DNA from: Malacoraja senta
Lineage: Eukaryota
Assembly: GCA_038087875.1 (NCBI GenBank)
Contig: CM075994.1
Coordinates: 4,030,001 to 4,094,000 of the forward strand
Direction of reading: 5' to 3'
DNA: 64,000 bases
The notes under the pieces are model-generated. The model did not search any database. It worked only from the letters and a program-made list of their open reading frames with translations, and was not told where the DNA came from. Shown here in pieces: positions 33,901 to 63,193 of the stretch (the stretch's first letter is position 1; every line of letters begins with the position of its first letter). The position numbers and the translations under genes are program-made.

Positions 33901-36900
33901 GGCCGGAGTAAGATCTCCGAAAGTGAGTCGTCAAATGCCGAAGGGCTACACGGCTATCCACTTCGAGTAAAACGTGATTACTGTGAATCGGTACTTGATG
34001 GCCGCCATTGATGTGGCGAGGGTCTCCTCCATATTAGTTTAGTTTAAAGGTACAGCGCGGAAACTGGCCCTTAGGCTCACCGGTTCCGCGCCAACCAGCG
34101 ATCCCCGCATATTAACACTATCCTATACCCATAGGGACATTTTTTACATTTACCAAGCCAATTAACACACAAACCTGTACGTCTTAGGATTGTGGGAGGA
34201 AGCCCAAGATCTCGGAGAAAACACACGCAGGTCACGGGAGCAACGTACAAACTCCGGACAAACAGCAACCGTAATCGGGATCGAACCCGGGTCTCTGGCG
34301 CTGCATTCGTTGTAAGGCAAATATTGTAATATAATCGTATTGTATGATTCTATTAGACCAGTCCCTGAATTTCCTTGTCATACATTAGGCACGCATGCAC
34401 ATTGCGAATTGTTTTATATTCTGAACAATGTAGTAGCAATGTTACAAAATTTTGAGATTTAAAAAATAAAGTCTGCAATTTATCCCATCAGATAAAGCAT
34501 AAAAAGAAGTTTAATTTGACACCTAATTCACTTTCATATCTTCAGTAATAAAACATTTATGGCCATTTTCATACTCGGAAATTAGCATCTTGTTCCCTAT
34601 TGCTTTTCCATTAACTTAACACAAAAGCTGTGATCGAGGACAGTTAAAAGCCCAAAACTTTCTTAAAAATTAAGAGAACTGAAAGAAATTTTCAGTTATT
34701 ATAGATTGAAGCATTCTGAAACAAATATGAAACAATCCTACTTAGAAGACATGAAATTAAAGCATATAATAAGTTAGTTACCTAATTGTAGCTAATTACA
34801 AAACTCAATTACTAGATCTAAACATCTATCAATTTCTTTAGAATAGATTAACATTTTTAAATAGCCTAAGTGTCCAAATAACATTCACACAAGAACTCAC
34901 AATATAACATCATTTTTAAATCTCATTGTCATGAATTTACAGGCCAAATGGAAGGAATTGAATGTTTAATACCTGTAAATTAATGGGCATTTAAATCATC
35001 TTGCGAGTGAGGATTTCTGGAACGCGATCTTTTGGACCGTTGATTTGCGGTGAATTTAACCCCATATCGGCATGAAAAATTCTGCCGTTAGTTCGGGGAA
35101 TAAAATCACCGTTTCGCAAGCAAAAATGTGAATTAAAGGCCTCTTAAGAAGCACTTTTATACATTAAAATAAATCACTTTCGTTTACCTGTCCCTTATGT
35201 GAAATCCGTCCCCGTTATCGGCGTTGACGGCTTCAGGAGCTGATTTTAAAATGACTCCAGCGCTGACATTGTCAATTTAATAAAAAATAAAAAATTCACA
35301 AAACACCCCTAGGAACGATTTTTCAGCAAACGCTTGTACTCCAACGAAATATAATACAGGACAAGGTAGGAGAAACCTGCGTTTTAACCCCGCCCGCCCC
35401 CCCCCCTCTAAAGGCGCCTAAATCGCGCACACGGCCAGTGGCAGAATTACAGCGCGACTGAAGGAAAGTATTGTAACATACCTAAATGTAGCACATTGAG
35501 AAGATTCAACGTCTTTTTTTTTTTAATTTTGCACAGAATCAGTTAGCTTACTCAATACATTTCCGCATCTTCTCTTTTCAACTTCTCCCTCTGTCAACAA
35601 TTGTTTCCGGGTCGTTTTAATATCCAGGTCCTAATCACCTTCGCTTCAATGAAATTTGTACGCATTGGTTCCCAGTTTACATGCACTTTAGCCATAAAGA
35701 AATTGGCTTTCTCTTGCATATACCTGTGCGTTTAGCATCAAGTAATGCTGACTGGCCCTTCGATCCCCAGTAAAGGGAAATCGTTACTCCTATTTCATTC
35801 ATTTCAGCATATATCACGCCTTTATATACTTCCATTATTTCCAAGGAAAGATAACGGATTTTCCCATCAAACCTGCACGCGCAGTAGTGCATTATGTTTC
35901 CATATATCTTTACGACCTGGAAGAAGAAAATTTACTACTGTCAAGAGAATGCCGGCTCAAGGAACAAAGTTATTCCTTGGTATTTTCTCGTAATCTATTC
36001 TCTTCGCATTTTCAACGACTGCCCTGCTCTACATTTTACCATTACTTGGTCACTGTAGGTAATTTACATTGGGCAATTAACCTACCAAATCGCGTCCCTT
36101 TGGGATATGAGAGTAAATCGGATCATCCGCAGTAAACCCACACGATAATCGTGGGAACGTATTAATTGTGTACAAATAGTTGGTTAAACAACGCACCGCC
36201 AATGTCTTTCCTATCACATGTTAATCGTAAGTATAAGTGAAATACCACTGCTCTATTAAAGTTTATAGGCATTCGACATGACTATTTGAGATTTAAATTC
36301 CCAGTTTCCATTTACTTTCCATAACCTTCCGCAACCCACTCATTCAATCTATCTACAATATATGGGAATGTTGCTCTTCCTTAATGTAGTGATAACCCAG
36401 GTGAAATATATTCGTACTGAACTATCAAACTAGAGTTTATTTTATAATGCTAACAATTCGGCAATAACACAAAGGAATATATTTAAAACACCACCCGAAA
36501 ATGTTAGTGATTCGAAATAATCAGATAATATTCAGATTTATACCATGGCAATAATGCATTTATAGCATATTCATCCGTTGCTCACGAACTGACAAATGAT
36601 ATACCACATCATGCTTGTGGAGAGCTGGAATTAATCTTTGCATGGCTTATCTGTTACAGAAATAGGGAAACTGAACGCTAGAGTGCAAGATGCTGGTAAG
36701 CCTTCCGTGCCTTAATTTGTAAATATACTTTCTCAACATCCTTTGAACGACTTTGGATGTTTGCGCTTTATGCCCCTTTCAAAATAATACCTACATTTGT
36801 AAAGATTTGTGTTGCCTATTATTGCTAGCTTTGCGATTGGATGGGTAGTACATTGCACATATTCGCCTTCTAAGTTGAGACATGTTTCGGTTTAGACATT

Positions 36901-39900
36901 AAAGGCTAAGAAAAACATCGATACTGATATGCAAAAATTATATCTTCGTTTTTGGACCAAGTCTTTCGAAGCTTCATCCTATCTACTTCCTCCTCCTGAA
37001 TATTCAGACTTTTTATAGCTTGTTTTGAGTAAAGCGTCATGTGTTGTCCAACCGTAACTGCCCTTGATAATGTAGTGGTGAAAACCTTTCCTTATTCTGT
37101 TCCATCCGTTACAAATAACCAAATGGTCTTTTTAGAAATGGAGATTCGAAATCCAGAGCCAAAGATGCTTCGGAAATAGCAAGAGTTTGTAAAATCAGGA
37201 TGCTGTTTACCTAAACGTGAACCTAAACTAGTAGTAATAATAGTATAATCTAAATTGGAACAGCTAATGTTCAATATCTTGTGCACCAAAAAAACACTAG
37301 TTTGGATTGCGTTTGATGGCACATATAGCAACACATAAGCTGTACGTGCCTTTTTGGACAAATATCTTACAGAGGAAGGTCTGCGTGCAAAGGATGCAGG
37401 TAAAACAAATTTACTCAAATAATATGTTTTTCTTTAACTGGTGGTTCCACCAACATCTAAAACCATCAGAAAATCGCGTGACGTTTTTTGCGTCAGTCTT
37501 CTCAGTGGTAAGCATCGGCAAAATACCAAGTTTGTGGATGATCCGAAGATAGGTGGAAGGGCAATTCTGTGACGGATAATGGGATTTGCAGAAGGATGTC
37601 AGCAGGTTGGGAGAGCGGCCTAAGTGGGTCAAAATGGCAACGGAATACAAAGTAGCAAAATGTACGGCCATGCACTTCTCTAACGAGAATAACGACGAAG
37701 AATGATTTCTAAATCGGAGGTGCAAGGGGTCTTGAATGTACTGGTGCGGGATACTCCACAATCCTTCTTGTCGTTCTCCTATCCTCATTGCAGCACAACT
37801 ATACCCATTCATATCGCTATAAAACTCTGATACATCTCACACATTTAATATACACTCGGATGTATCCCAAAACCCTCGCTCGAACACTCGGATACTCAAT
37901 TGGCAACTCATTTTTACACTCCTGTACAATCCATAACCTCTCTATAACGCTCTGGTACAACTGCACCTCGTCAATGAAACACTGTAATAGACCACCTCAT
38001 CCTACATCGCTGTGCCACTCTGATGCAAGCAACACCCTTCACTGCACATTTCTGATTAACCGAATCAGGGAATACATGGAATAATTGAATTTCACCAAAT
38101 GAAATCAGGCCGTGTCGCAAAGGGCTACATTTTTTTTTAAATTCATACACGGTGTTTCAATATTCGTACACGGCACCCATCTCTATTAATTCCACCGCAC
38201 AATACTTGCCCTGTATGGCTGAGCAATTCATGTTTCATATACCACACACAGTTCAGTTTAACTCTGTGATGCACACGGTTTCCGTCAGTGTTACGTCTTG
38301 ATGTACACCATATCCCTCACAGTCGTGCTTTGATGCAGCCCGCATCCCTCACTGGATTATACTTTTTCTTGCGTATGGGTGCACAGCCTAAAGTTGTAGG
38401 TCAATTTGTTCTATTTGATATATTTGTTTGTGCACGTCGGGTTGATTGCATTATTCGAAACATGGTGGACCACGTGAAGTTGCAATCTCCCACCCCACTG
38501 GATTATACTGTAAACATAGCATTAATTGGTATTAACAGTGATAACTGATGCTTAATTGCAGAATTGTTTTATTTCGACATATTTTAACTCCGCAGCTCTC
38601 GCAATCAAGTTCGAATATATTTATGGATACTTCGCACAGTTCAGTGGAAAGATTTGTAGTAACTTCTTTATTACAGTTAAAAATAAAGGCAAAAGATAAA
38701 TATTGCACACGGGAAAGAAATCGTATACTTACTTTACCTATACGTGTAGACAGTAATGCAAGTGAAACTCAGCGGTTGAGGCAGCAACTATGGAGCGAAG
38801 GAAATAGGCGGCGTTTCGGGTCGAGACCCTTCTTCGGTGTGTGTTGTAGCGTCATTGCAGAATATAGGGTCTAACCACCTATATGTGTGTGTTGTCGCGT
38901 CATTGCAGAAGGGTCGTGCTCCGAATTCCATATCAAGACAATTCTCCCACGAATCACAAGCTCAGCAAAATAATGTATTTCTATTCGATGTTTAAAATTC
39001 AAACAAATATTGTGCCCTCCCCTAGAATAATCCCATTAATGCAGGTGCATCTCCAAATCGAGATGCGAGAATTAGAATCATGCACATACGTTCATGAATT
39101 TCCTCGACTTCATATGATGTATTAAGATGGCGACTGCCTTTGTTTTTGAGGGTCACTATAAAAGATCCCGTTATTCAAAGAAGAGTCCGAAAACTAACCT
39201 CGATAATACCAAAATAAATTCATCTGTTTTTATTATTTCCACTTCCTTGCAGTTTACATATTGGCTAGCGTGCTACCTGTATTAACATACAACCGTAATA
39301 GTATACTGCCCGGCATTTTTTTCTTTCAACGTTAAGTATCTGCTGATAGGAATTAGTTGAATAAATACATCTTGGGCGTTCCGAATGCTGTCCATATTTT
39401 CTTTCCTCTCTCAGAACTGGAATCATTAATAATGACTAAGGTAATCAAAGTCTATAAATAATCGAACGACCACTCGAGTAGTCATTCTATCCGCTCTGAG
39501 AAAGTAACATTTACAACACAACTTGCCGTATAAACATATCAATTCACTTGCAATTGTCAGACTCTGAACTTTGAAACACATGCGAATGTTATAACTCCTG
39601 AAAAGTAACACTATTCATCAATGCAATATGAAAGGGGAACGGTTTAAAAGGGACATACGGTCAATATTTTCACACAGACGGTCGTGTGTAAGCTGCCAGA
39701 AAAAGTTGTCGAGGAAATTACAATTACAATGTAACAAAGTTATTGACACAACTTTAGAGTGATATAGACTAATGGGAATAGGACTAACTCGGATAGATGT
39801 CTTCATCGGCATTGACGAGGTGCGCCAAAGGGCATTTGCGTTATATGACCCTTATAGTATGAAAATCGTGCGTTACAGTGTCCTTGAATACTGTTCTTGA

Positions 39901-42900
39901 ATAATTGCGTGCAATTTGTGATTATCTGCAGAGTGGAATTATTTTCTTTGAGGTCTCCGTAAGTATAAAACACGCAACGTTGTTTCCCCAACACCTGCTA
40001 CTCATCTGTAAATATTTTGAAAATGTAAACACTGGCCATTTTCGAATTGGTGTTGATGTAATGGCTTCATTTGCTTTAAATATATTTTGCAGAAGTATTC
40101 GCTTAACTTATGCTTCAAACATTTTATAGATCTGAAGAAACGTTTGCTATCCTCTTTTATATTATTAACTAGCTTACCTTCTTGTTTTATCTTTTCTCAT
40201 CCTATTTTCTTTTTAGTTACCTCAGTTGGTTTTTAAAAGCTTTCCAATCCTCTGGCTTCCCACTATTCTTTGCGATATTATATGCCTTCTCTTTTAGTTT
40301 TATTCTCTTTCACTTGCAATGTCAGCCTTTCGCTTTAAGATGAAAAGATTCTGCGTCGGCCGAGTCTATCCCAGTAACTCCTGTTATTGCTGATCCACTG
40401 TCATTCCTGCAAGGGTCCCTTTCCAAGCAACTTTAGCCAGCTCTTCACTCATGCCTGTATTTATCTTTGCTCAACAGTATTCCCGGCACATCTGATTTTA
40501 TCTTCTCCCTCTCAAACTGCAGTTTGAATTTTATCATATTATGGTCATTACCTCCTGGGGGTTCCTTTACTTTAAGCTCCCTTATCAAATCTAGTTTGTT
40601 TCACGACCCCAAATCTTGAATTTAATTTTCCCCAGTTGGATCGATTGCAAACTGCTCTGAGAAGACATCTCGTACGCACTTTTCAAATTCCTTCTTTTCG
40701 GATTCAATATCAACCTGACGTTTCCAGTCTGCCTGCATATTAAATTCCCTAAGGACCACTGGAATATTTCCATTCTTACATGCCGATTGCATCTCCTGAT
40801 TTAATTTCTACCCTACATCCTGGGAACAGAGGCCTGTATACAACTCCCATCGGGTTATTTTTACCCTTGTAGTTTCACTCGATCTTATCGGTTTCCCAAA
40901 AATGCCTTTTAAATTTTCTGCCGACGAATCGGCTCATCCATGTCTGTGTACTTCCAGGGGCTGAACATATAAGCCCATGCACAATACACACATAACATAG
41001 TCCGTTAGACTTGAACCGGTGCCGCGATCATTCAACATTTTCTAACATTTTTGTCTGAGCACTGCAGTTTCTAATGGTTTTCCTCACTTCCGGAAGTATC
41101 GCGTGTGCGCCAAGTCTGCATTTTGCCTCAATCCATGATGTTTGCGTTTTCGTCCGTTGTATTGAATTATGAGCGTTAACCTGTCTTAGTAAATGTAAAC
41201 ATTAGACTTACCAATCTACAATACTCTTTTACAGTGAGCGACTTGCGAAGGAAAGAACAAGGTAAATGCGGTAGCATTGTTATACTGTGCGCTGAGCAAT
41301 GTTAAATGACTTCAAATTTCTGATTGTGAAGTGGCAGATCCAGAAAAGGTCCAATGTTTGCCTAATTAATATTCATCTCTGCAATCACGATTCCACTCTT
41401 CCTTATTTATTTTGCATTTCACAACAAATCGTTTCATCAGAGAAGCTCCCGGAAACACGGCAGCTTTAGATTGCTAAGCTTGTATTTTTTATAAAATCCG
41501 TGCCACTATAATTGGTAGGGCTATAACATTGCTTTGTGCTACTGGTTGATTTCAGAAATAGAAAAATTGAAAAAGAGTCTGCAGGACGCAGGTGAGTTAT
41601 CATGTAATGAATATTTTCTTCTAAATAATTACATCAAAATTGGTAACATGTCCTACATTTTCTGTTGTTGACCTGTATAAGGCGAGTAGAACGTTTATAA
41701 TGTTTCTCTGCATATTTACGCAGGTACATGCATATCAAAATATGAAGAAGAAACGACGTTTGTCCAATGCTCCGCTTTTTGCTTGCTTGCTTCCCCGACA
41801 GCGAACGTTCAATTAATTTTGACTTGAAATGCACTGTTAAATGTGCACTCCGCTATGACATGTCAAGAGGTGTTGGGCCTTGCCGTTAACGTCATCATTT
41901 TCTGGTTTAATACACGACTTCAATATGAAGTGTTTCGATGCTTATTGTTATTCTATATTTCATAATGTGATTCCTACTTTAATTATTATGACATTTTCAT
42001 ATACTCTGTAAATATCACAGCGTTTCCTGAAAAAGCAAGGACGCTGTCAGAAGGGTCATTAATCAGCCTGGGCGATTTTCTCAACCTTATGACTGTCATA
42101 AGCCGCATCTGAAATAATTTCGCTGCATAATTTATACACAAACCATCTCGGACTAGGTTGACTAAATAGATCCTAAAATATGTCTGTAACATAATAGATA
42201 TCAGTATTGGTATCATCAAGATTCTTGGGAAAACAAACAGTCCGCCTTCAGTTTAACAGGCCTGAACCTCACTTTCATTTGCCTCCGCACCAAGAAATCT
42301 ATCAATATATTATTGCTGATGTGCTCTTTCCATTATTTATAAAAGCACCAAGAATTAAAATTGAGCGAATTTCGCGTTAGTTTCTCTTATTGCCATAAAT
42401 CAAGGAATTATATCTGTAATGTTCTTACTTTTAATAAGAGCTATAAACTGTTCATATCAATTGCTCCACAGAATGCATCGCGCATCTTATGCAGCGCCGA
42501 TATCCCCTCCGTTTATTTAGTCACGTCGTTCTTCGCCTTTCAATTCTTTCAGATGAAATAAATACCGGCACTTTTGCCCAGAGCGATAACATGTAAATGT
42601 TAATTCCGACTGAATAGCGTGCCATAATCACATTTGTTGATTACAAGGTATGGAATGTCATCCGAAAGATTGTTGTGCTGTAGTTTTAAATGAGATACCG
42701 AAGATGGTGGGACAGTAATTCCTCTGCTTTATTTTCCACTTCTCGTCATTCAGCTCTACAATCCATTTTCTTCCACCCAACTCCTTGCTGTCCTATCAAC
42801 GAAGCTGTTTGTGTAAATACAAATCTAGTTGTTCTATGATGGCACGATCCAAGCTGTAAATGTATGATTTATTTTAAATTAACTTCAGCGGCTCGAAATA

Positions 42901-54900: not shown

Positions 54901-57900
54901 TATTTTAATTATCAGCACAGGCTTCTATTGAGGCAAATTAAACTTTGATTTGAGAAGTAAATGTATGTGGAAACGTTTTAAAAAACCCGAACAACTGATG
55001 TAAGAGTGCTTTCTCTTTTAGAGTTGAAAGAAAACTGCGCAACAGGTGAATTGATTTCCACGTGTTTGTTTTCCAATCCATTCTATTGCGTCTTCCTCGA
55101 ATTGGATCTACAATCTGAAACAAATATGCACCTGTTAATTACTCTGAGATCATGAATGCTATCAATGACTGAATTTTCAGTAAGCGAAAAGCAAATGGAT
55201 TCATCCATAAGTAAATAAAGATCTGAAATCATTTTGGTAGACCATTAACAACATTTCGCATGACATATAACAGTAGAAATCACCGAAGAGCTATAGTTTC
55301 CACAATGCTTATTGCTGTATCTTGTACAGCAATAGAATACAGAATACAGCAACAAACACTGCTATTTGGATATAGCCGTTTCCGTTCAGAATCATGCCAG
55401 CAAGACGAAAGAGTACAAAGCTTTGATCAAAGCAGCACTTGTTATAGATTGGCCAGAATGAACAACAGCAGAACAGTCCAGATGAAACTATCATTGAAAG
55501 AAATTGAGGAAAGTTAGGTCGAACAACTTGAAGATAATGTTGTCACATTCTGAGCGGCACACTAGCGCAACGGTAGAGTTGCTGTCCTACACCGCTGACC
55601 CGCTGAGTTACTCGAGCACTTTGTGTCTATATCTGTTATATACCAGCATCGCCAGTTCCTTTCACTATGTCTTTAACCATTCATAGAAACATAGAAAATA
55701 GGTGCAGGAGGAGGCCATTCGGCCCTTCGAGCCAGCACGGCCATTCATTGTGATCATGGCTGATCGTCCCCAATCAATAACCTGTGCCTGCCTTCTCCCC
55801 ATATCCCTTGACTCCACTAGCCCCTAGAGCTCTATCTAACTCTCTCTTAAATCCATCCAGTGACTTGGCCTCCACTGCCCTCTGTGGCAGGGAGTTCAAT
55901 AAATTCACAACTCTCTGGGTGAAAACGTTTTTTCTCACCTAAGCCTTAAATGACCTCCCCTTTATTCGCCACACAGTTCCGAATGTCTTCGTTAACCAGT
56001 GATATTTAGTGACATTCGAAGTTGGCATAAACAGCTCAAGAACACTGTATCCCAAATATAGTGCTATATGTACGTTTTGTACAAATTTACACGCCGTGTG
56101 ATAAAATGCACAAATAAATCCCTCTTCCCAAAGTAGTTTCTTCTGCGTTTCGAAATGGGAAATAGCCTTTCCCATGCGACTTAAACATTAATGATAAAAT
56201 CCCATTTGACTCGACATTACTCCAAAACATATCCATATAACCATATAACCATATAACCATAACAACACGGAAACAGGCCATCTCGGCCCTTCAAGTCCGT
56301 GCCGAACATTTTATTATTATTATATTTTTTTTAAATTAAAAATAAATACTTCCCCCTAGTCCCATCTACCTGCACTCAGACCATAACCCTCCATTCCTTT
56401 CCCGTCCATATACCCATCCAATCTATTTTTAAAGGAAAACATCGAACCTGCCTTCACCACTTCCACTGGAAGCTCATTCCACACAGCTACCACTCTCTGA
56501 GTAAAGAAGTTCCCCCTAATGTTCCCCCTATACTTCTGTCCCTTAATTCTCAAGTCATGTCCCCTTGTTTGAATCTTCCCTACTCTCAATGGGAACAGCT
56601 TATCCACGTCCACTCTGTCAAACCCGCTCATAATTTTAAAGACCTCTATCAAGTATCGTCATCCTGGAAGCTTCAACTACCAGATCATCGATTACTTTCA
56701 AGAATGATATCCGTCCTCAAACAGACTTTCTGCTCACCTTTTCACAGTTGTCACTGCATGCCATATCCCCACATGTATTTGCCCCCATATCGACAAATCG
56801 CTTACCGTAATTACGAGTAACTGGTTTGCTTACGAGGAGTTAATACACATCTCAAAAGTCGGAAACATAATCCGCTGGATATGCAATCACTAAAATTACT
56901 TATTAGGCTCGAAGCATTCCCATATCAAATAAAAAACTGCGTTTATTATTTCCAGCATAAAGAAAACCGTATAACCCGCCTTCATTACATTCTCTCGGAA
57001 CTCTTACACAACTAACAGGAGGCATCAGCGAACGTCTGCTATTGAGGTCCGGAGATCGTTCGGTAGATTTCATTACCCGTTCTCTCAATGAAGAGTCCCC
57101 AGTTCATGGTAACATTTTGCCTTTCAGGATTATTCACGTCTCTATTTGAGCTCTTTAAGTCTATATCAAAAATCATTCTGCATATGCCTTACTTTTATCG
57201 CTGCGAATGTTATCTTGACGTTCATAATGTGACTACCTGCAGAGCCGGATGAGAATGATTGATCGATCATATATTTCAGACGAAGATAAGCTGTCAGCTA
57301 TTCAAAGAGACATAGGTAAGTTACTCCAATAAAATGTGACATATTTATGGCTAATGTTGAACTTATGGGACTACATTTCAACAAGATGTTCTCAACCCAG
57401 GTGTAATTGACTGAAAGCAAACCATTGCATTATCTTTAATATATCATTTACTTTCATGTTCACAGTGCAACTGTTGCGTCTGAAAGATAAAGGTACAAGT
57501 TATCCGGCCAAACATGATGTTGTGACTAATATTTTGTTATGTGATAAAATAGGACGGATCAAAAATAAGCGGGATATTCCTGATAGAAACAACAGCAAAG
57601 AGGATGCTATAAAATAAAATAATGAAGACACCGAATGAGGAGAAATTGTGATGCGTTTAGTCACAACTTAATTGTTGTGGTTTAAATATAAAAGTGACGT
57701 GACTTGATGATGACAATAAAAGCATTAATAATCAGTAAAACGATGTAATAAAGAGCAGAACTCAAATAAAATAACAATTAACAAGTTGTTCGTTTATACA
57801 CCAGTGTTGACTATCGGTTAAGGGGACATTGGGGGGGGGGGGTGCAGACCCTCATTAGTTCAATGTATCAAATAGGCAAAGAGTATAGTAGAGTGCAAGA

Positions 57901-60900
57901 GGTAGAAACCCTGAAATGATACTGCAATCACTTTAACCTGAGTCGAAAATACACTTAAATTTGAATTAAAAAACAATGAGAATTCCACGGATTTTCATTG
58001 GCTTTGCATTGCTTACAAAGTGGGAGTCGTGAACAGTTCATGCATGATTACCACGGCGGGCGGTGGGGCTGCAACAGTCATTGCTACTACATAAAGAAGT
58101 GTGCAACAAAAGCTCTTAATATAATTTTACATTACTTATATTTATTTTAATTAATGCGCGGGATTTTTTCTTTAGAACTTGAAGAACTTCGTCGACAGAA
58201 TAGTAAGCTATACTATCTGATGATCACAATTTCCACCAACCATTTTCTTTTCCTGTGGTATTCAGAATGACGGTAACGTTGCAGCACTGATATTTATATA
58301 TTTATATATTCCCGTAAATTAGAAAGCACAGTTGAAATTCATGCAAAACGTGAAGTATTGGAATCAATGGCGCAGAATGGAAATGCAAATAAATAATAAC
58401 GTTCAGTTTGTTTTGAGCAGGCTCGTTGAAATAAAACAACATTAGATTCATCAGGTTACATCAATGCAAATTGTCCCAACAAAAAAAACATGTTAGTATT
58501 GATCACAATCAGCATCAGGTAGAAGCTAATGTCATAGTTTGAATTTCAATGGGCCGTAATTTAACTAAATATATCGGAAATTTACCTGGCCAAAGTGCAT
58601 CGACCATAGGGATTGGCTGAGGGGACCAGGGAAGTAAAAGCATGAAAATGCATGTCCGTGTTAATTCCTCGCAGTTGCACCAAATGTTATCAGAGTAACA
58701 ATTCATTAACACGAGCTCGGAAAAGTACTATTCATTTTTTTAAATGTGCTGCATTTTTGATGTTTTCTTTCAGGTAGATCCGTGCAGGAATGCGGTAAGA
58801 ACGCAAAACCAAATCAAAGATAAATATAATTTCAAACTGAGACTTCCTCTGTGCGTCGTTTAACTGTCCGCTTACATATTTTCAGAGAAAGAACTTTATG
58901 CAGCCAAATCAGGCACGTAAATATAAAATGACTTGGAAGACTTACAAAATGTAATTTCCGACAAAATGCAACAACAGACAACAGACAATAGACAATAGGT
59001 GCAGGAGGATCCCAGTCGGCCCTTCGAGCCAGCATCGCCATTCAATGTGATCATGGCTGATCATCCCCAATCAGTACCCCGTTCCTGCCTTCGGTTCGCA
59101 AGCCACGAGAACACATCCCAGACAATAACCATTACCGTGATTTTATTTAATTCGACTGATAGATGTTGTCTCACGATCTACAGAATATCACCAGGGACAA
59201 TAATTAAGCACAAGCAACTATAGCACTATTCCCAGATTTTTTTTCCCCAAGAAAAATATTGTTCAAATATAAAAATTGTCCCCTTTTGGTTTTCATGATA
59301 TATATTTCAATCATCCAATCCTGGAGTGCAGCATACGCAGCGCAATCGATACGCAAACACCTGAAATCAGACTTATGCAGATAACGTTGTGTAACCGGAA
59401 GAAAAATGTCATTGGCACAACGTCTAATAAGAACTGACGGAACATTTCTCCTCTGCTGTATGAATGTATTGCGATTGTCGTGTTATCCGAATTATAGTAG
59501 TAACATATATGGGGAAACATATCATTTTATCAGTTAATTAAAATTAAGGAGCAGCGGTATTGAATTCCAAATGGAAGCTATGAAAATTATTGTTTTGTAA
59601 TTTCAGAACTTGAAACTATTAAATCTGCGCTGAAGTCAGCAAGTAAGGGATTTCTTCTCCTGATGGTTGCGGAAATTTAAACCCAAAATACGTGGAAAGT
59701 CGGGATATCTGTGGAGAATTAATATGCATCTGAGAGGGAATTGGTTACAGAGAAAATACAGAACGAATTAAATGAGAGATTGATTTGAGAGATAGCATCA
59801 AAACAATGGGCGGCAAAGCATCATTCCATGCCGTTAGGAAATTAAACGACGAAATCGCAAATCTTTGAATTCATCTACAGCTTGCCTGAAGTGCAATATC
59901 AATAAAAAATGACAAACCTTCAGTATATGAACTTTTTGATGGAGTCTAATAAATGACAACTAATTGTATAATCCCTCATCGTCAAAACGCCCACTAATGG
60001 TCGACATGCTCTCTTCGCAAATAAAAAATAATGTGTCAGAAACGAAACGAAAACTGAATTTTGAATTCAGAAACTATATATTCGCATTATATGCAGAAAA
60101 TCTACATTTATCGGGTTAACCTATTCGTCCAGAATTTCTTCCACGTCATTGTCGAGGTAGATATATATGTCATCTAATACTATGCCAACATCTATTACTA
60201 TTGGCAGAACGTGGCTGATATCCGTTGTGCGGCCCATATTAACATATTTTACATTCATCGTTGTATTTTCCAAGACCTAACATTTCCATGGGTTCTTCAA
60301 AAATGTGCCCCTGATAGAGCAGGGGTTCCCAACATTTTTCGTCCGGTTTACCCTGGCAACCTTAATAGCACATAACATTGTTATTTCACTTATTTATGCG
60401 CAATTAATGATGAACATATACCAGAACCAAACACTGTCAGTCAATGAGAAAAAATATGTACAAAATCCAGAATCAACAAATTTTTAACCTGGGTAGGCGA
60501 AACTTACCGCATGGGGTTAATATTTACCCCAGGTTGGGAGCCCTTTTGATAGAGAAACAAAAGGTATGCCACTCCAATTGACTGCGTACAACTATGTTGA
60601 GTAATTAATGAATAAAAGGTTAAATCTGTCTTGGTTAAACTGGATATGAGAAATAGGGAGAAGAGTGCGGAACAAATTATATGCATTGTCAAGCAGCGCT
60701 CTTGTTTTACCCATGGAAAACCTGTCTAATTTAACTGGAGTGAACTCTGGTATTTTTGTATCGCACCTCTAAATCCTTTTTATTTTATTCTTCAATGTAA
60801 AGGAAAATGCTCAGAATACGTACTAACGTCGACATTTTATCCCAAAAGAGACTGATTTGCAAGTCAAAGAGGATGGTAATTAACACTAATACAGTTTTAA

Positions 60901-63193
60901 ATGCTATTTAAATGCTAATTTGGATCTATAACATTCACATTTTTGCAAGCTAAAAGTTGACCAAAATGTATTTGTTGGCATTTTCAACTCAGAACTTCAG
61001 AAACATGTAAAGAGCGATGGTGAGTGACAACAACATACCGCACGATTTTTCGCTGATTCATCTTGAAAAATGCCGAAACAGGCCTGCTGAAGCAACAAAT
61101 GTACATATTATTGCGACTCAATTCACCTCATTTGAAAGTTATTAAAATGTTGGAGACAGATAAGCCAATTTAGACAATGCCAAATGTCCCACTCCCCAGC
61201 CTTTCAGGGTAACATACCTATCGATGTTTCACGATCTTAAAATCCACAGGCCCCGCTGTTGCAGATTCGATCCCCGGCAAAGGGATCGCAAGCTCCGCGA
61301 TGTTAAAGTCCCACAGACTCCCGCGGCTTGGAGCGCCGGGTCAGTCTCGAGGAAAGGTCGCCAACTCCACGATGTTAGGCCGTAGTGCGGACGGAGATAC
61401 GATACGGAAAATAATCGCATCTCCGTCGAGGTAAGAGAGTGAAAAAAGTTTCCCCCAATCTCCCCCCCCCCCCCCGCACACCCCCCCAACATAAAACCAA
61501 CCAAGGTACACTAAAACATAATTTAACACTACCTTAAAATAACAAAACCATAAGAAAGGACAGACATTGGTGAGGCAGCCATTGCTGGTGGCGCCACTGG
61601 CGCAGTATTAAATCACCCATATTCTTTGCAACAGCGCCGCTTCCAATATTCTGCTAAGTGATAGCCTGTGATGGCATTCTAATACACGTATTGTCAGAAG
61701 ATTTTTTTTTTGTTCCATGCCAATCTTGCGCATGGTCAGATGGACTACATTTAAGTAAATATCGAAAAGCGAATATGAGGGAAAAGAAGAGACAAGACCA
61801 CGACATAAGAAATCTTGTGCTCAACTGCAGGAGAAGGGAATAAATGAATAACAAAGATAAGAACAGTATGACATTTCAACTTTGTCGTTGTTGCTTAATG
61901 CAAGTTGTTTCAATTTTTATACGTTGCAGAGGAACAGATACGTGAAACACAAGAGGGTAAAACAATTCGTTTTTATCAATTTTCAACCATCGTTTCTGTG
62001 GCTGGTATGAATGTAGAACAAATGCTGTGAAGAAATGCTGCCATTGTGTCAGTGTCAGACAAAAGTGTTTTATGAAGGACCCGTCATGAACATAGTGGAA
62101 TGCGAGGAAGCATTGAGGGACTGGGTGAGCTATTCCTGGTGCCTGCGATCTTGCACTTTCCTATGCAATTAAAATTATTCTTACAATGTCATTGGGCTGA
62201 ATGATAAGCGGCTGTTCTGTGGCGAGTTGTCGATTATCTGCACTGCTCATCAGAATGGACAAGACATTCAGCATCGCACCGAACACAATTGAATTTCAAA
62301 CCACGTGCGAGGACAAATGTCGACGCACGCGGTCAGTATCCCTGCCGGTTGATTTTTTTTTCTAAGATCTAATTCCGAAAGCTGAAAGCACGGAAACTAC
62401 CCTCTTCCCCAGCCTCTCCGCAGCCAGGCCACATTATGTTAATTGAGTTCACTCGACTACAGTTAAATATAAATATATGTGTATTATAATTCACATAATG
62501 GTTTAATCTACCAACATATATAATGACCGTCCTTTAAAAAAAGTGAGATGTTTTCTTTAGCTGAAATATTCAAATTATTTAAGTATTGTTCAATCGAATA
62601 TGTTTGCAAAGGACTTCAGACAAAGGCATGAGGTTTCTGCCTGTTAAGGCCTGATCAACTGCGTTCTGTTACTCCTCGCGTCAGGCCATAGCACTGCACA
62701 TCACTTGAGAATTCCACGGCTGAAATAAGATCATTTTACGATCGTTTTCAGTCTTATTTTTTAATAATAAATATTTAATTTATCGTAAAAATTGCAAGAG
62801 GTACACTTTTTCTACAGGGACAAACACACATTTGATTGGCACTTTAAATGTTACCATTGACCTAATAGATAACGATGATATATTTCCTAGAACGTAAGAA
62901 AATAGAAGCGATTCGACTGAACGTTGGTAAGAACACTGATTTCCCATGTATTTTATTGCTTTGGTTATTTACGTGAAAGCAATTCCCATTGTTTTATCGA
63001 TTAATCTAAGCTCCAACCGCATTTTCAAATAGACGCAATTTCACTAAATAACTGAGTCAAACGATCACAACTAAAATCCTTTTGTGCATTGCGCAATCAC
63101 TGATCTATGATATTATGAAATATTATTGAAAATATAACATGTAAAACTCTGCCTCTTATATTGTAGAGGAACTACTCCGTCGGCAGGAAACAG
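907..63193 (+). CDS. Internal part of a multi-micro-exon gene encoding a long coiled-coil protein (46 phase 1-1 exons of 18-36 nt, about 438 aa; both ends outside the window)
   Basis: Manual splice-site reading. Each exon has a pyrimidine tract plus AG, a GT donor, a length divisible by 3 and an open phase-1 frame. The joined peptide begins DKKLQEVET-ELRDLKEKIKVS and ends ERKKIEAIRLNV-EELLRRQET, with heptad-like Leu/Ile spacing. Confidence 0.9.
1800..1835 (+). CDS. micro-exon 36 nt ELRDLKEKIKVS
   Basis: gatttttag|AACTA...ATCAG|gtaaga. Confidence 0.88.
2361..2387 (+). CDS. micro-exon 27 nt ADGSLQAKF
   Basis: cttctttcag|CGGAT...ATTCA|gtaagt. Confidence 0.88.
3200..3223 (+). CDS. micro-exon 24 nt METLMQMK
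   Basis: ttctttctttag|TGGAA...GAAAG|gtcaga. Confidence 0.7.
4483..4509 (+). CDS. micro-exon 27 nt ELQRISRRF
   Basis: tcctcttttcag|AACTG...TTTTG|gtatgt. Confidence 0.85.
4995..5021 (+). CDS. micro-exon 27 nt EDNVETKMR
   Basis: aattgcag|AGGAC...GAGAG|gtaaac. Confidence 0.8.
5937..5972 (+). CDS. micro-exon 36 nt EIESLNMALQSV
   Basis: gttttgcag|AAATT...CGTAG|gtgagg. Confidence 0.88.
6695..6721 (+). CDS. micro-exon 27 nt ETKLRQKEA
   Basis: ttccttccaag|AAACT...AGCAG|gtgagt. Confidence 0.88.
6917..6943 (+). CDS. micro-exon 27 nt ELDTKCKTP
   Basis: cattttag|AACTG...TCCTG|gtgagt. Confidence 0.85.
7450..7670 (-). mobile_element. decayed tRNA-derived SINE
   Basis: similar to 34130-34320. Confidence 0.6.
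8315..8341 (+). CDS. micro-exon 27 nt DERTTDLRN
   Basis: tttttgccgcgcag|ATGAA...AAACG|gtaaaa. Confidence 0.8.
8525..8551 (+). CDS. micro-exon 27 nt ELDQLRQSN
   Basis: ttttttaaaaacag|AACTT...CAATA|gttagt; paralogous to exon 58176. Confidence 0.8.
9054..9080 (+). CDS. micro-exon 27 nt KDMLEKKDK
   Basis: tatttctgcag|AGGAT...CAAAG|gtaagt. Confidence 0.9.
10329..10364 (+). CDS. micro-exon 36 nt ELETLRSTLHDT
   Basis: tattctag|AGTTG...TACAG|gtgatt. Confidence 0.85.
11155..11495 (+). mobile_element. CR1 3' end fragment
   Basis: ESRTRGHRFKMKG; tail gggccgaagggcctgtttcc. Confidence 0.85.
13013..13039 (+). CDS. micro-exon 27 nt DQHEQCSIN
   Basis: attctttag|ATCAG...CAATG|gtgagt. Confidence 0.85.
13477..13494 (+). 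CDS. micro-exon 18 nt AQSLNV
   Basis: tttattttcag|CACAA...CGTGG|gtaaga. Confidence 0.75.
14627..14653 (+). CDS. micro-exon 27 nt ENETLQIKL
   Basis: cttgcttacag|AAAAT...ACTCG|gtaatg. Confidence 0.8.
14960..15280 (-). mobile_element. decayed CR1 3' end
   Basis: degenerate FTQNVASAGNAL, FKRILER. Confidence 0.65.
17636..17659 (+). CDS. micro-exon 24 nt ELKSKLKA
   Basis: catctccag|AATTG...GGCCG|gtaagc. Confidence 0.82.
19019..19054 (+). CDS. micro-exon 36 nt GEEGKDLAAKCI (or 9-nt GEE using the internal donor at 19028)
   Basis: atttacag|GAGAAGAAG|gtaagg, or extended to ...TATAG|gtacag. Confidence 0.7.
   Translation, partial: EKKVRTWLLNV
19195..19220 (+). other. 26-nt exon-like unit, 1 nt short (xLNFLLGQI if one base is restored)
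   Basis: tgtttgcag|GTTGA...GATCA|gtaagt; as written it gives GGT TGA (stop). Confidence 0.5.
20010..20323. mobile_element. partial PIF/Harbinger-like MITE
   Basis: CGACC/GGTCG-rich internal repeats; terminus AAGTGGGACAGG; other end missing. Confidence 0.55.
20813..20830 (+). CDS. tentative micro-exon 18 nt (x)KCWRL
   Basis: gctgac...tgcatttag|TTAAA...ACTAA|gtatgt; weak pyrimidine tract; not counted among the 46. Confidence 0.35.
   Translation, partial: LNVGD
21068..22163 (+). mobile_element. CR1-type LINE, 5'-truncated (RT C-terminus and 3' UTR)
   Basis: PQRSVLGPQIFTIYIN, KFVDDTKLGG; (TTCTATGT)n tail. Confidence 0.93.
22626..24201 (+). mobile_element. Tc1/mariner DNA transposon, full length, transposase disrupted
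   Basis: TA flanks at 22624-25 and 24202-03; TIR CAGTGCATTCAGAAAGTATTCAG / CTGAATACTTTCTGAACGGACGG; peptide remnants MKTKEL, ETKIELFG, VKHGGGSIM, FQSDNYPKHT, WPSQNTDLNSIEHL with frameshifts and stops. Confidence 0.95.
24675..25100. mobile_element. Penelope-type terminal repeats in inverted arrangement (non-autonomous element)
   Basis: arm 24675-24770 is the reverse complement of arm 24966-25060; motif CTGAAGAAGGGTCTCGACCCGAAAC; other copies near 405-495, 30180-30265, 31786-31880, 38760-38835, 48825-48880, 54120-54370 and 55590-55670. Confidence 0.75.
25649..25675 (+). CDS. micro-exon 27 nt (E/K)CKELLQKT
   Basis: tttttctttaag|AATGC...GACAA|gtaagt. Confidence 0.88.
26696..26722 (+). CDS. micro-exon 27 nt MRQILLKNA
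   Basis: ttgctttcag|TGCGA...TGCAG|gtaaat. Confidence 0.88.
27777..27812 (+). CDS. micro-exon 36 nt EIIQLQTKIKEA
   Basis: ctcttttctag|AAATT...AGCAT|gtgagc. Confidence 0.85.
28050..29100 (-). mobile_element. very decayed Gypsy-like pol/integrase remnant
   Basis: minus-strand remnants only loosely resemble integrase motifs; many stops. Confidence 0.3.
29240..29435 (+). mobile_element. SINE 3' portion
   Basis: gctggtcggcgtggactcggtggg...taaactaaactaaac. Confidence 0.75.
29875..29892 (+). CDS. micro-exon 18 nt SDSRIP
   Basis: ttatgccag|CGGAT...TCCAG|gtacag. Confidence 0.6.
31087..31119 (+). CDS. micro-exon 33 nt GSFNRDDEPFN
   Basis: ctctgac...tttcgttctcaacag|GCTCA...CAATG|gtaatg. Confidence 0.55.
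31434..31460 (+). CDS. micro-exon 27 nt ECKKLLQAS
   Basis: ttcttatcag|AATGC...GAGCA|gtgagt; paralogous to 25649. Confidence 0.9.
32262..32288 (+). CDS. micro-exon 27 nt MRQLLVKDI
   Basis: ttctctcgcag|TGAGA...TATCG|gtgagt; paralogous to 26696. Confidence 0.9.
32558..33737 (-). mobile_element. CR1-type LINE, 5'-truncated
   Basis: KFADDTKLGG, YRALVRSHLEYCVQFWSP; (TCTATTG)n tail. Confidence 0.95.
34035..34320 (-). mobile_element. tRNA-derived SINE
   Basis: B-box-like GGTTCGATCCC on the minus strand; (TAAAC)n tail; related copies at 7450-7670, 29240-29435, 36030-36200 and 49500-49650. Confidence 0.85.
34434..35484. mobile_element. non-autonomous DNA transposon, 1051 bp
   Basis: TIR TAGCAATGTTACAA / TTGTAACATACCTA; direct repeat AATGTAG on both sides. 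Confidence 0.85.
36660..36695 (+). CDS. micro-exon 36 nt EIGKLNARVQDA
   Basis: ctgttacag|AAATA...TGCTG|gtaagc. Confidence 0.88.
37373..37399 (+). CDS. micro-exon 27 nt EEGLRAKDA
   Basis: atcttacag|AGGAA...TGCAG|gtaaaa. Confidence 0.85.
37500..37745 (+). mobile_element. decayed CR1 RT fragment
   Basis: aagtttgtggatgatccgaagataggtgg resembles KFADDTKIGG. Confidence 0.65.
39415..39440 (+). other. 26-nt exon ELESLIMTK, 1 nt short of the expected 27 nt
   Basis: ctttcctctctcag|AACTG...CTAAG|gtaatc; occupies the third slot of a 36-27-27-27 module. Confidence 0.75.
39625..39850 (+). mobile_element. decayed CR1 3' end
   Basis: tttttcacacagacggtcgtg resembles FFTQRVV. Confidence 0.55.
40110..40875 (-). 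mobile_element. decayed CR1 internal fragment (endonuclease/linker region)
   Basis: reverse-complement similarity to 42953-43700. Confidence 0.7.
41235..41261 (+). CDS. micro-exon 27 nt (V)SDLRRKEQ
   Basis: ctcttttacag|TGAGC...ACAAG|gtaaat. Confidence 0.88.
41556..41591 (+). CDS. micro-exon 36 nt EIEKLKKSLQDA
   Basis: gatttcag|AAATA...CGCAG|gtgagt. Confidence 0.9.
42953..45495 (+). mobile_element. CR1-type LINE ORF2 (partial endonuclease, RT, 3' UTR), frameshifted
   Basis: EPTREKAILHLV, GSDHNML, NYRPVSLTSVVGKMLE, DFQKAFDKVPH, FADDTKLGG. Confidence 0.96.
45559..45585 (+). CDS. micro-exon 27 nt ESVVRKKDT
   Basis: catttgcag|AATCT...TACAG|gtaata. Confidence 0.85.
46010..46640 (-). mobile_element. 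nested, decayed non-CR1 LINE 3' ends
   Basis: (GATTCA)n and (TAA)n tails followed by tttatt, typical of antisense LINE termini. Confidence 0.45.
47476..48310 (-). repeat. retroelement 3' end with (TATCG)n tail plus GC-rich interspersed repeat
   Basis: microsatellite tail at 47476-47497; GC-rich body; a related GC-rich repeat lies at 61230-61600. Confidence 0.6.
48404..48430 (+). CDS. micro-exon 27 nt DMSDHLKTD
   Basis: tattacag|ATATG...CGATG|gtgagt; paralogous to 60993. Confidence 0.88.
49006..49032 (+). CDS. micro-exon 27 nt DEKLKEAKT
   Basis: branch site TACTAAC at 48981; tttttcttacag|ACGAG...AACGG|gtagga. Confidence 0.9.
49780..49815 (+). CDS. micro-exon 36 nt ELEQLEAIRADI
   Basis: tatttccag|AACTC...TATCG|gtgagt. 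Confidence 0.9.
49977..50003 (+). CDS. micro-exon 27 nt EKLLRMKDA
   Basis: ttttcatag|AGAAA...TGCCG|gtaaac. Confidence 0.85.
51163..52190 (-). mobile_element. CR1-type LINE, 5'-truncated
   Basis: SGVPQGSVLGPQLFVIYINDLD, FADDTKLGG; same tail as the 32558 copy. Confidence 0.95.
52374..52400 (+). CDS. micro-exon 27 nt EIKALQKSN
   Basis: tttatttgcag|AAATT...GAATG|gtatgt. Confidence 0.88.
52700..54020 (-). mobile_element. older CR1-type LINE fragment with an internal ~50-bp tandem duplication (53650-53752)
   Basis: FADDTKIFGG, LRPHFQYCEQLW. Confidence 0.85.
55022..55045 (+). CDS. micro-exon 24 nt ELKENCAT
   Basis: ttctcttttag|AGTTG...AACAG|gtgaat. Confidence 0.82.
55682..55965 (-). mobile_element. 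CR1 3' end fragment
   Basis: near-identical to the reverse complement of 45230-45490. Confidence 0.9.
56233..56652 (-). mobile_element. CR1 3' end, different subfamily
   Basis: IEVFKIMSGFDRVD, TRGHDLRI, FFTQRVVAVWNELP; (ATGGTTAT)n tail. Confidence 0.88.
57280..57315 (+). CDS. micro-exon 36 nt DEDKLSAIQRDI
   Basis: atatttcag|ACGAA...CATAG|gtaagt. Confidence 0.9.
   Translation, partial: TKISCQLFKET
57466..57492 (+). CDS. micro-exon 27 nt VQLLRLKDK
   Basis: tgttcacag|TGCAA...TAAAG|gtacaa. Confidence 0.85.
58176..58202 (+). CDS. micro-exon 27 nt ELEELRRQN
   Basis: ttttctttag|AACTT...GAATA|gtaagc. Confidence 0.88.
58774..58794 (+). CDS. micro-exon 21 nt SRSVQEC
   Basis: ttttctttcag|GTAGA...ATGCG|gtaaga. 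Confidence 0.78.
58975..59090 (-). mobile_element. CR1 3' UTR/tail fragment
   Basis: matches 51163-51270. Confidence 0.85.
59607..59642 (+). CDS. micro-exon 36 nt ELETIKSALKSA
   Basis: aatttcag|AACTT...AGCAA|gtaagg. Confidence 0.88.
60320..60546. mobile_element. hAT (Charlie-like) MITE
   Basis: TIR CAGGGGTTCCCAAC / GTTGGGAGCCCTTT; 8-bp TSD TGATAGAG. Confidence 0.88.
60849..60875 (+). CDS. micro-exon 27 nt KTDLQVKED
   Basis: branch site TACTAAC at 60821; ttatcccaaaag|AGACT...GGATG|gtaatt. Confidence 0.82.
60993..61019 (+). CDS. micro-exon 27 nt ELQKHVKSD
   Basis: ttcaactcag|AACTT...CGATG|gtgagt. Confidence 0.88.
61230..61600 (-). repeat. GC-rich interspersed repeat
   Basis: shares gctccgcgatgtt and poly-C/A-rich architecture with 47930-48310. 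Confidence 0.55.
61930..61956 (+). CDS. micro-exon 27 nt EEQIRETQE
   Basis: acgttgcag|AGGAA...AGAGG|gtaaaa. Confidence 0.82.
62891..62926 (+). CDS. micro-exon 36 nt ERKKIEAIRLNV
   Basis: tatttcctag|AACGT...CGTTG|gtaaga; paralogous to 49780. Confidence 0.88.
63167..63193 (+). CDS. micro-exon 27 nt EELLRRQET
   Basis: atattgtag|AGGAA...AACAG|gtacga; paralogous to 49977. Confidence 0.85.

Follow-up and report, generated by a model that had tools for sequence, protein, structure and literature searches.

A 64,000-nt stretch of the genome of the skate Malacoraja senta (GenBank assembly GCA_038087875.1, contig CM075994.1, positions 4,030,001 to 4,094,000, forward strand; hereafter the window, whose own numbering is used throughout) carries a long run of micro-exons on its + strand that follow one another in a repeating cassette of 36, 27, 27, and 27 nt. 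We consider it likely that this array is an internal part of a large + strand coding gene, that its phase-1 micro-exons encode a coiled-coil rod, and that the array has grown by tandem duplication of the cassette. A preliminary description of the window had listed 22 such exons between 36660 and 63193 as a 39-residue module repeated six times and had traced them to an ancient tandem duplication of multi-exon cassettes, the introns of which diverged while the lengths of the exons stayed constrained. The exon calls given here and in Table 1 rest on the sequence alone.

Exon Borders, Splice Sites, and Reading Frame

All 22 exons attributed to 36660-63193 were recovered on the + strand between AG and GT sites, with the lengths that had been proposed for them (36,27,26,27 / 36,27,27,27 / 36,27,27,24 / 36,27,27,21 / 36,27,27,27 / 36,27), and positions 36660, 49780, 57280, 62891, and 63193 proved to be true exon borders. 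The ten peptides quoted in the preliminary description likewise all lie on the + strand, each between an AG and a GT; because every intron is in phase 1, the true exons sit one base to the right of the frames in which these peptides were quoted. The introns follow the pattern ...ag/exon...G/gt, in which the final exon base, nearly always G (20 of the 22 exons), opens a codon that is completed by the next exon, the split codon being G/AA, G/AT, or G/TG, and the exons are symmetric. The acceptors are CAG in 16 cases, TAG in five, and AAG in one, each behind a pyrimidine tract, and the donors are mostly GTAAG, GTGAG, or GTAAA. The exons are 66% purine, as compared with 50% across the region, and are separated by introns of 117 nt to ∼8 kb; the coding share of the span is 2.4%.

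When the 21 exons that remain without the 26-nt exon are spliced, one frame reads through 203 codons with no stop, whereas the other two contain 16 and 19 stops. Splicing of 13 exons that lie upstream of 36660 gives the same picture, with no stop in 120 codons in one frame and 6 and 12 in the other two. To count candidates, we took stop-free AG..GT stretches of 27 or 36 nt with the amino-acid make-up of the array. There are 43 of these in phase 1 on the + strand versus 4 on the − strand, and 20 second-order Markov simulations yielded 1-12. Among lengths of 15-60 nt, only 27 (27 vs 3) and 36 (16 vs 1) are enriched. For six 36-nt exons to occupy every fourth position in a row of 22, p is ∼3e-5, and the repeated DNA segments of the window contain none of the exons. 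The array as a product of chance is excluded.

Clustering by Slot and the Hierarchy of the Cassette

We number the exons of each cassette as slots 1 to 4. It had been proposed that the peptides match by slot from one module to the next, and clustering by slot was tested on 27 short exons; the clustering held, with a mean BLOSUM62 score of 6.1 within slots versus −0.7 between them (z = 7.0; 0 of 3000 permutations as high), and it persists at z = 5.5 when the comparison is restricted to 36660-63193. The proposal stands for slots 1, 2, and 3, which are coherent, and falls for slot 4, which is not. The most coherent is slot 2 (E..LR.KD.), with a within-slot score of 14.3; slot 1 scores 13.2 over 12 residues and slot 3 (EL..L.KSN) scores 8.9. 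Across slots, the likenesses are between slots 1 and 3 (+4.4) and between slots 2 and 4 (+5.0), with all cross pairs negative, and the four-exon cassette is therefore a doubled two-exon unit, with halves of 12 + 9 and 9 + 9 residues. An older two-exon unit thus underlies the cassette (21 + 18 residues).

The slot-1 exons are of two types, alpha (..L.DA), which scores 19.4 within the type, and beta (..AIR.DI), which scores 23.7; the score of alpha versus beta is 5.5. Three beta cassettes share the acceptor motif ATATATTTC, a short intron after slot 1, and an 'LL' exon in slot 2, and both of the complete beta cassettes have a shortened, Cys-bearing slot-4 exon. The motif, which had been noticed as common to the acceptors of 49780, 57280, and 62891, does lie directly ahead of all three, and the 9-mer occurs in nine copies in the window versus 1.5 expected; the short introns of 161, 150, and 240 nt described after 49815, 57315, and 62926 are real as well. 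Such a linkage of coding and noncoding features across neighboring exons is the pattern expected from whole-cassette duplication.

We note that two alpha cassettes, those beginning at 10329 and 59607 (both start with ELET), have unusually short introns between slots 2 and 3, at 12875-13012 (138 nt) and 60876-60992 (117 nt), respectively. Both lengths are multiples of three. These introns may be the mark of a third cassette sub-lineage.

Age of the Proposed Duplications and Constraint on the Exons

In same-slot comparisons, the exons are 45-53% identical versus ∼30% in the flanking 30 nt of intron at each end. The proportion of synonymous sites that differ (pS) among same-slot exons is 0.69-0.72, which is saturated, and the corresponding nonsynonymous proportion (pN) is 0.43-0.53; pN between slots is 0.69. 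The contrast between pN and pS vanishes or reverses in the two wrong frames. At the level of the protein, whole modules are 26% identical in pairwise comparison versus 9% with shuffled residues. With synonymous sites saturated and amino acids kept, the duplications are therefore of ancient date, and selection on the protein has preserved the exons.

The introns are consistent with this age. A self-BLAST of the window returned no collinear similarity between cassettes, and every repeated segment was a transposon present on both strands; the sole trace of intron homology between cassettes is ∼25 nt ahead of three beta acceptors. The missing intron homology fits a great age and does not contradict duplication. 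What the introns do contain is fragments of reverse transcriptase and a short element of very high copy number. Slot clustering, saturated pS, and the sharing of nothing but transposons between introns together support the earlier reading of an ancient tandem duplication of multi-exon cassettes with diverged introns and constrained exon lengths, with the exception of slot 4, where length was not kept (27, 24, or 21 nt).

Predicted Protein Product

The 204 residues of the spliced product contain no Pro, two Gly, and no aromatics, with 47% charged residues and 12.7% Leu. Judged by this sequence, the product is most likely a leucine-periodic, α-helical coiled-coil rod, in which the helices would presumably pair. 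The module-averaged hydrophobic profile is strongest at positions 2, 5, 9, 12, 16, 23, 26, and 34, and it is dominated by the harmonic k = 11 of 39, a beat every 3.545 residues (p = 0.009 by permutation). Formally, 39 residues equal four heptads and one hendecad or, equally, 21 residues (six turns) and 18 residues (five turns). The 39-residue module that had been described holds for modules with four full-length exons and does not hold for cassettes 3 and 4. An α-helix rises 0.148 nm per residue, the value used for the rod-length estimate; with each full cassette, the hydrophobic stripe would regain its face of the helix and the rod would lengthen by ∼5.8 nm. The restored phase of the stripe provides a reason for exon lengths to have been held while sequences drifted.

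Extent of the Array and a Model for Its Growth

The modules described in 36660-63193 are real, and their restriction to six, or to that range, is wrong, with exons of the same kind running from 907 to 63193. There are at least ten 36-nt exons in the window (at 1800, 5937, 10329, 27777, 36660, 41556, 49780, 57280, 59607, and 62891), and the order 36-27-27-27, or the same with a shortened last exon, occurs 5.5 times in 36660-63193 and at least two more times upstream. The first exon (907) and the last (63167) both stand in midcassette, and the gene therefore continues past both ends of the window. Gap filling with slot-specific peptide profiles and splice models gave no convincing extra exon in 2387-4483, 14653-25649, 27812-31434, or 32288-36660, and the 3.6-kb intron at 27813-31433 did not yield the slot-2 exon that should follow 27812.

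We propose that an old two-exon unit paired an 'EL..L' exon with a '...LR.KD.' exon, and that two such units would have given the four-exon cassette of 36+27+27+27 nt, or 21 + 18 = 39 residues. Many tandem duplications of this cassette, possibly by unequal crossing-over, would then account for the 36-nt exons counted here and for an array that runs off both ends of the window. Because the exons are all phase 1-1 and nearly all end in G, the duplication, loss, or skipping of an exon or of a cassette keeps the frame, and the length of the rod can consequently change in steps. On this model, the array would be spliced in vivo, perhaps with its purine-rich exon sequence acting as a splicing enhancer, and the rod may serve as a spacer or ruler.

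Points Against This Reading and Alternative Explanations

A number of observations weigh against the reading of the array as part of a working gene that grew by cassettes. Two exons break the frame. Inclusion of the 26-nt exon at 39415 would place an in-frame TGA at the start of the exon that follows, and the exon at 27777-27812 ends in T rather than G, so that its join to 31434 gives TAA. Since all exons are phase 1-1, skipping of either one keeps the frame. The two defects may reflect assembly error, pseudo-exons in a live gene, or early gene decay, and for 39415 a single-base assembly error is possible. The 36-27-27-27 regularity is lost between 14.6 and 25.6 kb. Slot 4 is incoherent in sequence (scores of −1.2 and 1.5 in two comparisons) as well as in length, at 27, 24, or 21 nt. 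Cassettes 3 and 4, with 38 and 37 residues instead of 39, break the 11-turn closure. For the long concatenated segment, a Fourier spectrum shows a weak peak, at 3.47, the clear period appearing only in the module-averaged profile. The searches add to this list. A 6-kb stretch used as a query against public runs met two runs only, both of genomic DNA, with no splice joints and no RNA run, and the 107-residue spliced peptide had no homologue at E ≤ 0.01 among proteins of 59-187 residues. A long annotated product is invisible to the latter search, and its blank result is no evidence of novelty. Pfam and PDB sequence searches returned weak, sub-threshold coiled-coil noise only.

Two further negatives concern the identity of the gene. 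No domain other than those of transposons was found in a Pfam scan of the open reading frames (ORFs) of at least 90 residues in the window, and no named vertebrate gene with coiled-coil exons of 27/36 nt came up in a search of the literature.

As a side observation, index words of the 80-nt stretch at 49758-49837, which comprises the exon at 49780 and its flanks, occur in public runs under five organism labels from six studies, the match consisting of only three words. The occurrence of these words in several organisms hints that the locus is common to close relatives. For one of the five labels a polyA RNA run exists, which is a lead only.

Several of the points above are what a dying or dead gene segment would produce, in which the periodic exons survive as relics of a gene that once functioned and no longer contribute by splicing to a working protein. 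The frame shift caused by the 26-nt exon at 39415 can be read in this way, as can the T at the end of the exon at 27777, which yields TAA with the next recognizable exon, the missing slot-2 partner of that exon at 27777, the irregular pattern at 14.6-25.6 kb, and the failure of the 6-kb query and the 59-187-residue protein search to find an RNA run or an annotated homologue. We nevertheless regard decay as unlikely, as ∼40 exons retain AG/GT sites, pyrimidine tracts, and one open frame, the product is without proline, and pN is smaller than pS in the proposed frame only; moreover, both defective exons can be skipped in frame, and one of them, 39415, may be defective through a single-base error of assembly.

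A different objection accepts a working gene and denies the duplication of cassettes. The array might have grown by single exons or by two-exon units, with the rhythm and the likeness within slots imposed later by selection for a 39-residue period. Such convergence draws on the clear two-exon A/B alternation, a slot 4 that has no slot-specific sequence, an absence of the intron homology that would prove common descent of whole cassettes, and the existence of a structural rationale for a period of 39 residues. Convergence of the protein is not a ready explanation for the beta cassettes, however, which link ATATATTTC, a short intron after slot 1, an 'LL' exon in slot 2, and a short Cys-bearing slot-4 exon, nor for the short slot-2/slot-3 intron (138 and 117 nt) that is shared by the alpha cassettes at 10329 and 59607, and we hold this account to be improbable. 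A last account, in which the exons are open frames by chance or fragments of transposable elements, as introns full of remains of long interspersed nuclear elements (LINEs) with reverse-transcriptase fragments and of the very high-copy short element might suggest, is refuted by an excess of candidates in just one strand, one phase, and two lengths, by exons that all lie outside repeated segments, and by 203 open codons, and we give it practically no credence.

Exon Coordinates and Repeats within the Introns

The exons of 36660-63193 and those farther upstream are collected in Table 1.

Table 1. Micro-exons of the array in window coordinates, with the cassettes of 36660-63193 listed before the upstream groups
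Feature	Coordinates	Strand	Length (nt)	Peptide	Remarks
Cassette 1 slot 1	36660..36695	+	36	EIGKLNARVQDA	alpha type
Cassette 1 slot 2	37373..37399	+	27	EEGLRAKDA	
Cassette 1 slot 3	39415..39440	+	26	ELESLIMTK	one base short
Cassette 1 slot 4	41235..41261	+	27	VSDLRRKEQ	
Cassette 2 slot 1	41556..41591	+	36	EIEKLKKSLQDA	alpha type
Cassette 2 slot 2	45559..45585	+	27	ESVVRKKDT	
Cassette 2 slot 3	48404..48430	+	27	DMSDHLKTD	
Cassette 2 slot 4	49006..49032	+	27	DEKLKEAKT	
Cassette 3 slot 1	49780..49815	+	36	ELEQLEAIRADI	beta type; ATATATTTC at 49768-49776; next intron 161 nt
Cassette 3 slot 2	49977..50003	+	27	EKLLRMKDA	
Cassette 3 slot 3	52374..52400	+	27	EIKALQKSN	
Cassette 3 slot 4	55022..55045	+	24	ELKENCAT	
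Cassette 4 slot 1	57280..57315	+	36	DEDKLSAIQRDI	beta type; ATATATTTC at 57269-57277; next intron 150 nt
Cassette 4 slot 2	57466..57492	+	27	VQLLRLKDK	
Cassette 4 slot 3	58176..58202	+	27	ELEELRRQN	ends in A
Cassette 4 slot 4	58774..58794	+	21	SRSVQEC	weakest call by peptide; splice sites good
Cassette 5 slot 1	59607..59642	+	36	ELETIKSALKSA	alpha type; ends in A
Cassette 5 slot 2	60849..60875	+	27	KTDLQVKED	
Cassette 5 slot 3	60993..61019	+	27	ELQKHVKSD	intron ahead 117 nt
Cassette 5 slot 4	61930..61956	+	27	EEQIRETQE	
Cassette 6 slot 1	62891..62926	+	36	ERKKIEAIRLNV	beta type; ATATATTTC at 62878-62886; next intron 240 nt
Cassette 6 slot 2	63167..63193	+	27	EELLRRQET	window ends before slots 3 and 4
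Upstream extension	907-933, 1800-1835, 4483-4509	+	27, 36, 27		two exons expected between 1835 and 4483, uncertain; candidates 2361-2387 and 3200-3223
Upstream complete cassette	5937-5972, 6695-6721, 8525-8551, 9054-9080	+	36, 27, 27, 27		
Upstream complete cassette	10329-10364, 12848-12874, 13013-13039, 14627-14653	+	36, 27, 27, 27		
Two exons off the 36-27-27-27 rule	16374-16397, 17636-17659	+	24, 24		8-kb intron with LINE remains next
Exon group	25649-25675, 26696-26722, 27777-27812, 31434-31460, 32262-32288	+	27, 27, 36, 27, 27		36-nt exon ends in T

One LINE family is present in four copies in introns of the array, at 21068-22160, 32573-33737, 44209-45500, and 51160-52190; the copies are 75-90% identical, occur on both strands, and carry the remains of a reverse transcriptase (Pfam RVT_1). 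Short elements occupy 58850-59250, 60250-60650, and 61250-61650, where the summed contig word depths in the two genomic runs range from ∼3,000 to 3,000,000, by far the highest being at 58850-59250. The element at the latter position is related to copies at 22052-22153, 32563-32684, 45389-45490, 51165-51274, and 55691-55795, at the ends of LINE fragments, which suggests that it may be a short interspersed nuclear element (SINE) sharing the tail of a LINE. An intron also holds a tandem repeat at 53648-53753, with a 51-nt unit in 2.1 copies and 94% matches.

Comparison with Known Systems

The closest documented precedent is the cytoplasmic tails of chicken BG (B-G) proteins, the principle of which the skate array would share. 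These tails draw on 13-36 exons, which are 21 nt long (sometimes 24) and supply one heptad apiece; border residues are shared between exons, such that exons can be gained, lost, or skipped in frame, and the length of the tail varies with the number of exons (PMC4046983). Butyrophilins have a few heptad exons (PMC4046983). Like the BG tails, the skate array would draw a coiled-coil-forming region from a long run of micro-exons. It differs in that its exons are 27 and 36 nt (a few 24 or 21) instead of the 21 nt that marks BG, in its four-exon super-repeat of 39 residues, and in introns of 117 to ∼8000 nt that are filled with transposons, as opposed to the short introns of BG. The window, which covers only the middle of the gene, has no visible IgV or transmembrane exon. 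Because the 21-nt feature fails and the ends of the gene lie beyond the window, we do not file the array as a member of the BG/butyrophilin group, the likeness being one of architecture.

Hierarchical repeats that arose by duplicating blocks of several small exons, with a structural period constraining exon length, are known from the super-repeats of nebulin and from the PEVK region of titin. Unlike those of the skate array, the nebulin and titin exons are 84-105 nt or longer and encode no coiled coil, and their block duplications are partly recent, with introns that can be aligned. Tropoelastin and non-fibrillar collagen genes have phase-1 split codons, a G as the last exon base, and exons that are small multiples of 9 nt (27, 36), and in elastin two exon types alternate. 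The skate array has the same phase-1, G-ending exons of 27 and 36 nt. A collagen or elastin product is ruled out by composition, there being no Gly-X-Y repeat and no Pro/Gly/Val-rich or KA cross-link sequence, with 2 Gly and 0 Pro in 204 residues.

Tropomyosin was reportedly found by McLachlan and Stewart in 1976 to have periods of 39.3 and 19.7 residues. It consists of unbroken heptads encoded by ordinary exons of 63-134 nt. Both tropomyosin and the skate module have a period of ∼39 residues and a half period of ∼19.5 (21 + 18 in the skate) in a helical sequence of the two-stranded type, a resemblance that is numerical only, and a Pfam scan of 107 residues at E values up to 1 gave no match to the tropomyosin family. 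The neck of a CLEC4F-type lectin was considered as a model and rejected, as that neck is a single exon. Coiled coils that keep their length but not their sequence have been proposed to be molecular spacers (PMC5082667), and the pattern of the skate array, in which length is kept and sequence drifts, fits this description.

A bolder proposal, which we put forward as speculative and rather doubtful, is that the array belongs to an unrecognized family of elasmobranch (or wider vertebrate) genes with very long coiled-coil rods encoded wholly by micro-exons, the length of which would be set in quanta of four exons, 11 turns, and ∼5.8 nm. Its period of 39 residues is that of tropomyosin, and on these grounds the rod might serve a periodic filament, F-actin for instance, as a ruler or side-binder; alternatively, it might be the giant tail of a BG-like membrane protein, in which case the origin of micro-exon coiled-coil tails would move back to the base of the jawed vertebrates. 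The name of the gene and the domains at its ends would tell a cytoskeletal ruler from a receptor tail or a tether. With 2.4% of its span coding, the array marks a gene class that standard gene finders and ORF scans overlook. If expressed, it would be a clear case of a structural rule, by which 21 + 18 = 39 residues make 11 turns of the helix, that is borne by exon lengths and not by exon sequences and that would have survived duplications of such age that synonymous sites and introns are now randomized. It would also carry the BG principle, whereby the number of micro-exons tunes the length of a coiled coil, into another exon grammar and a far older lineage.

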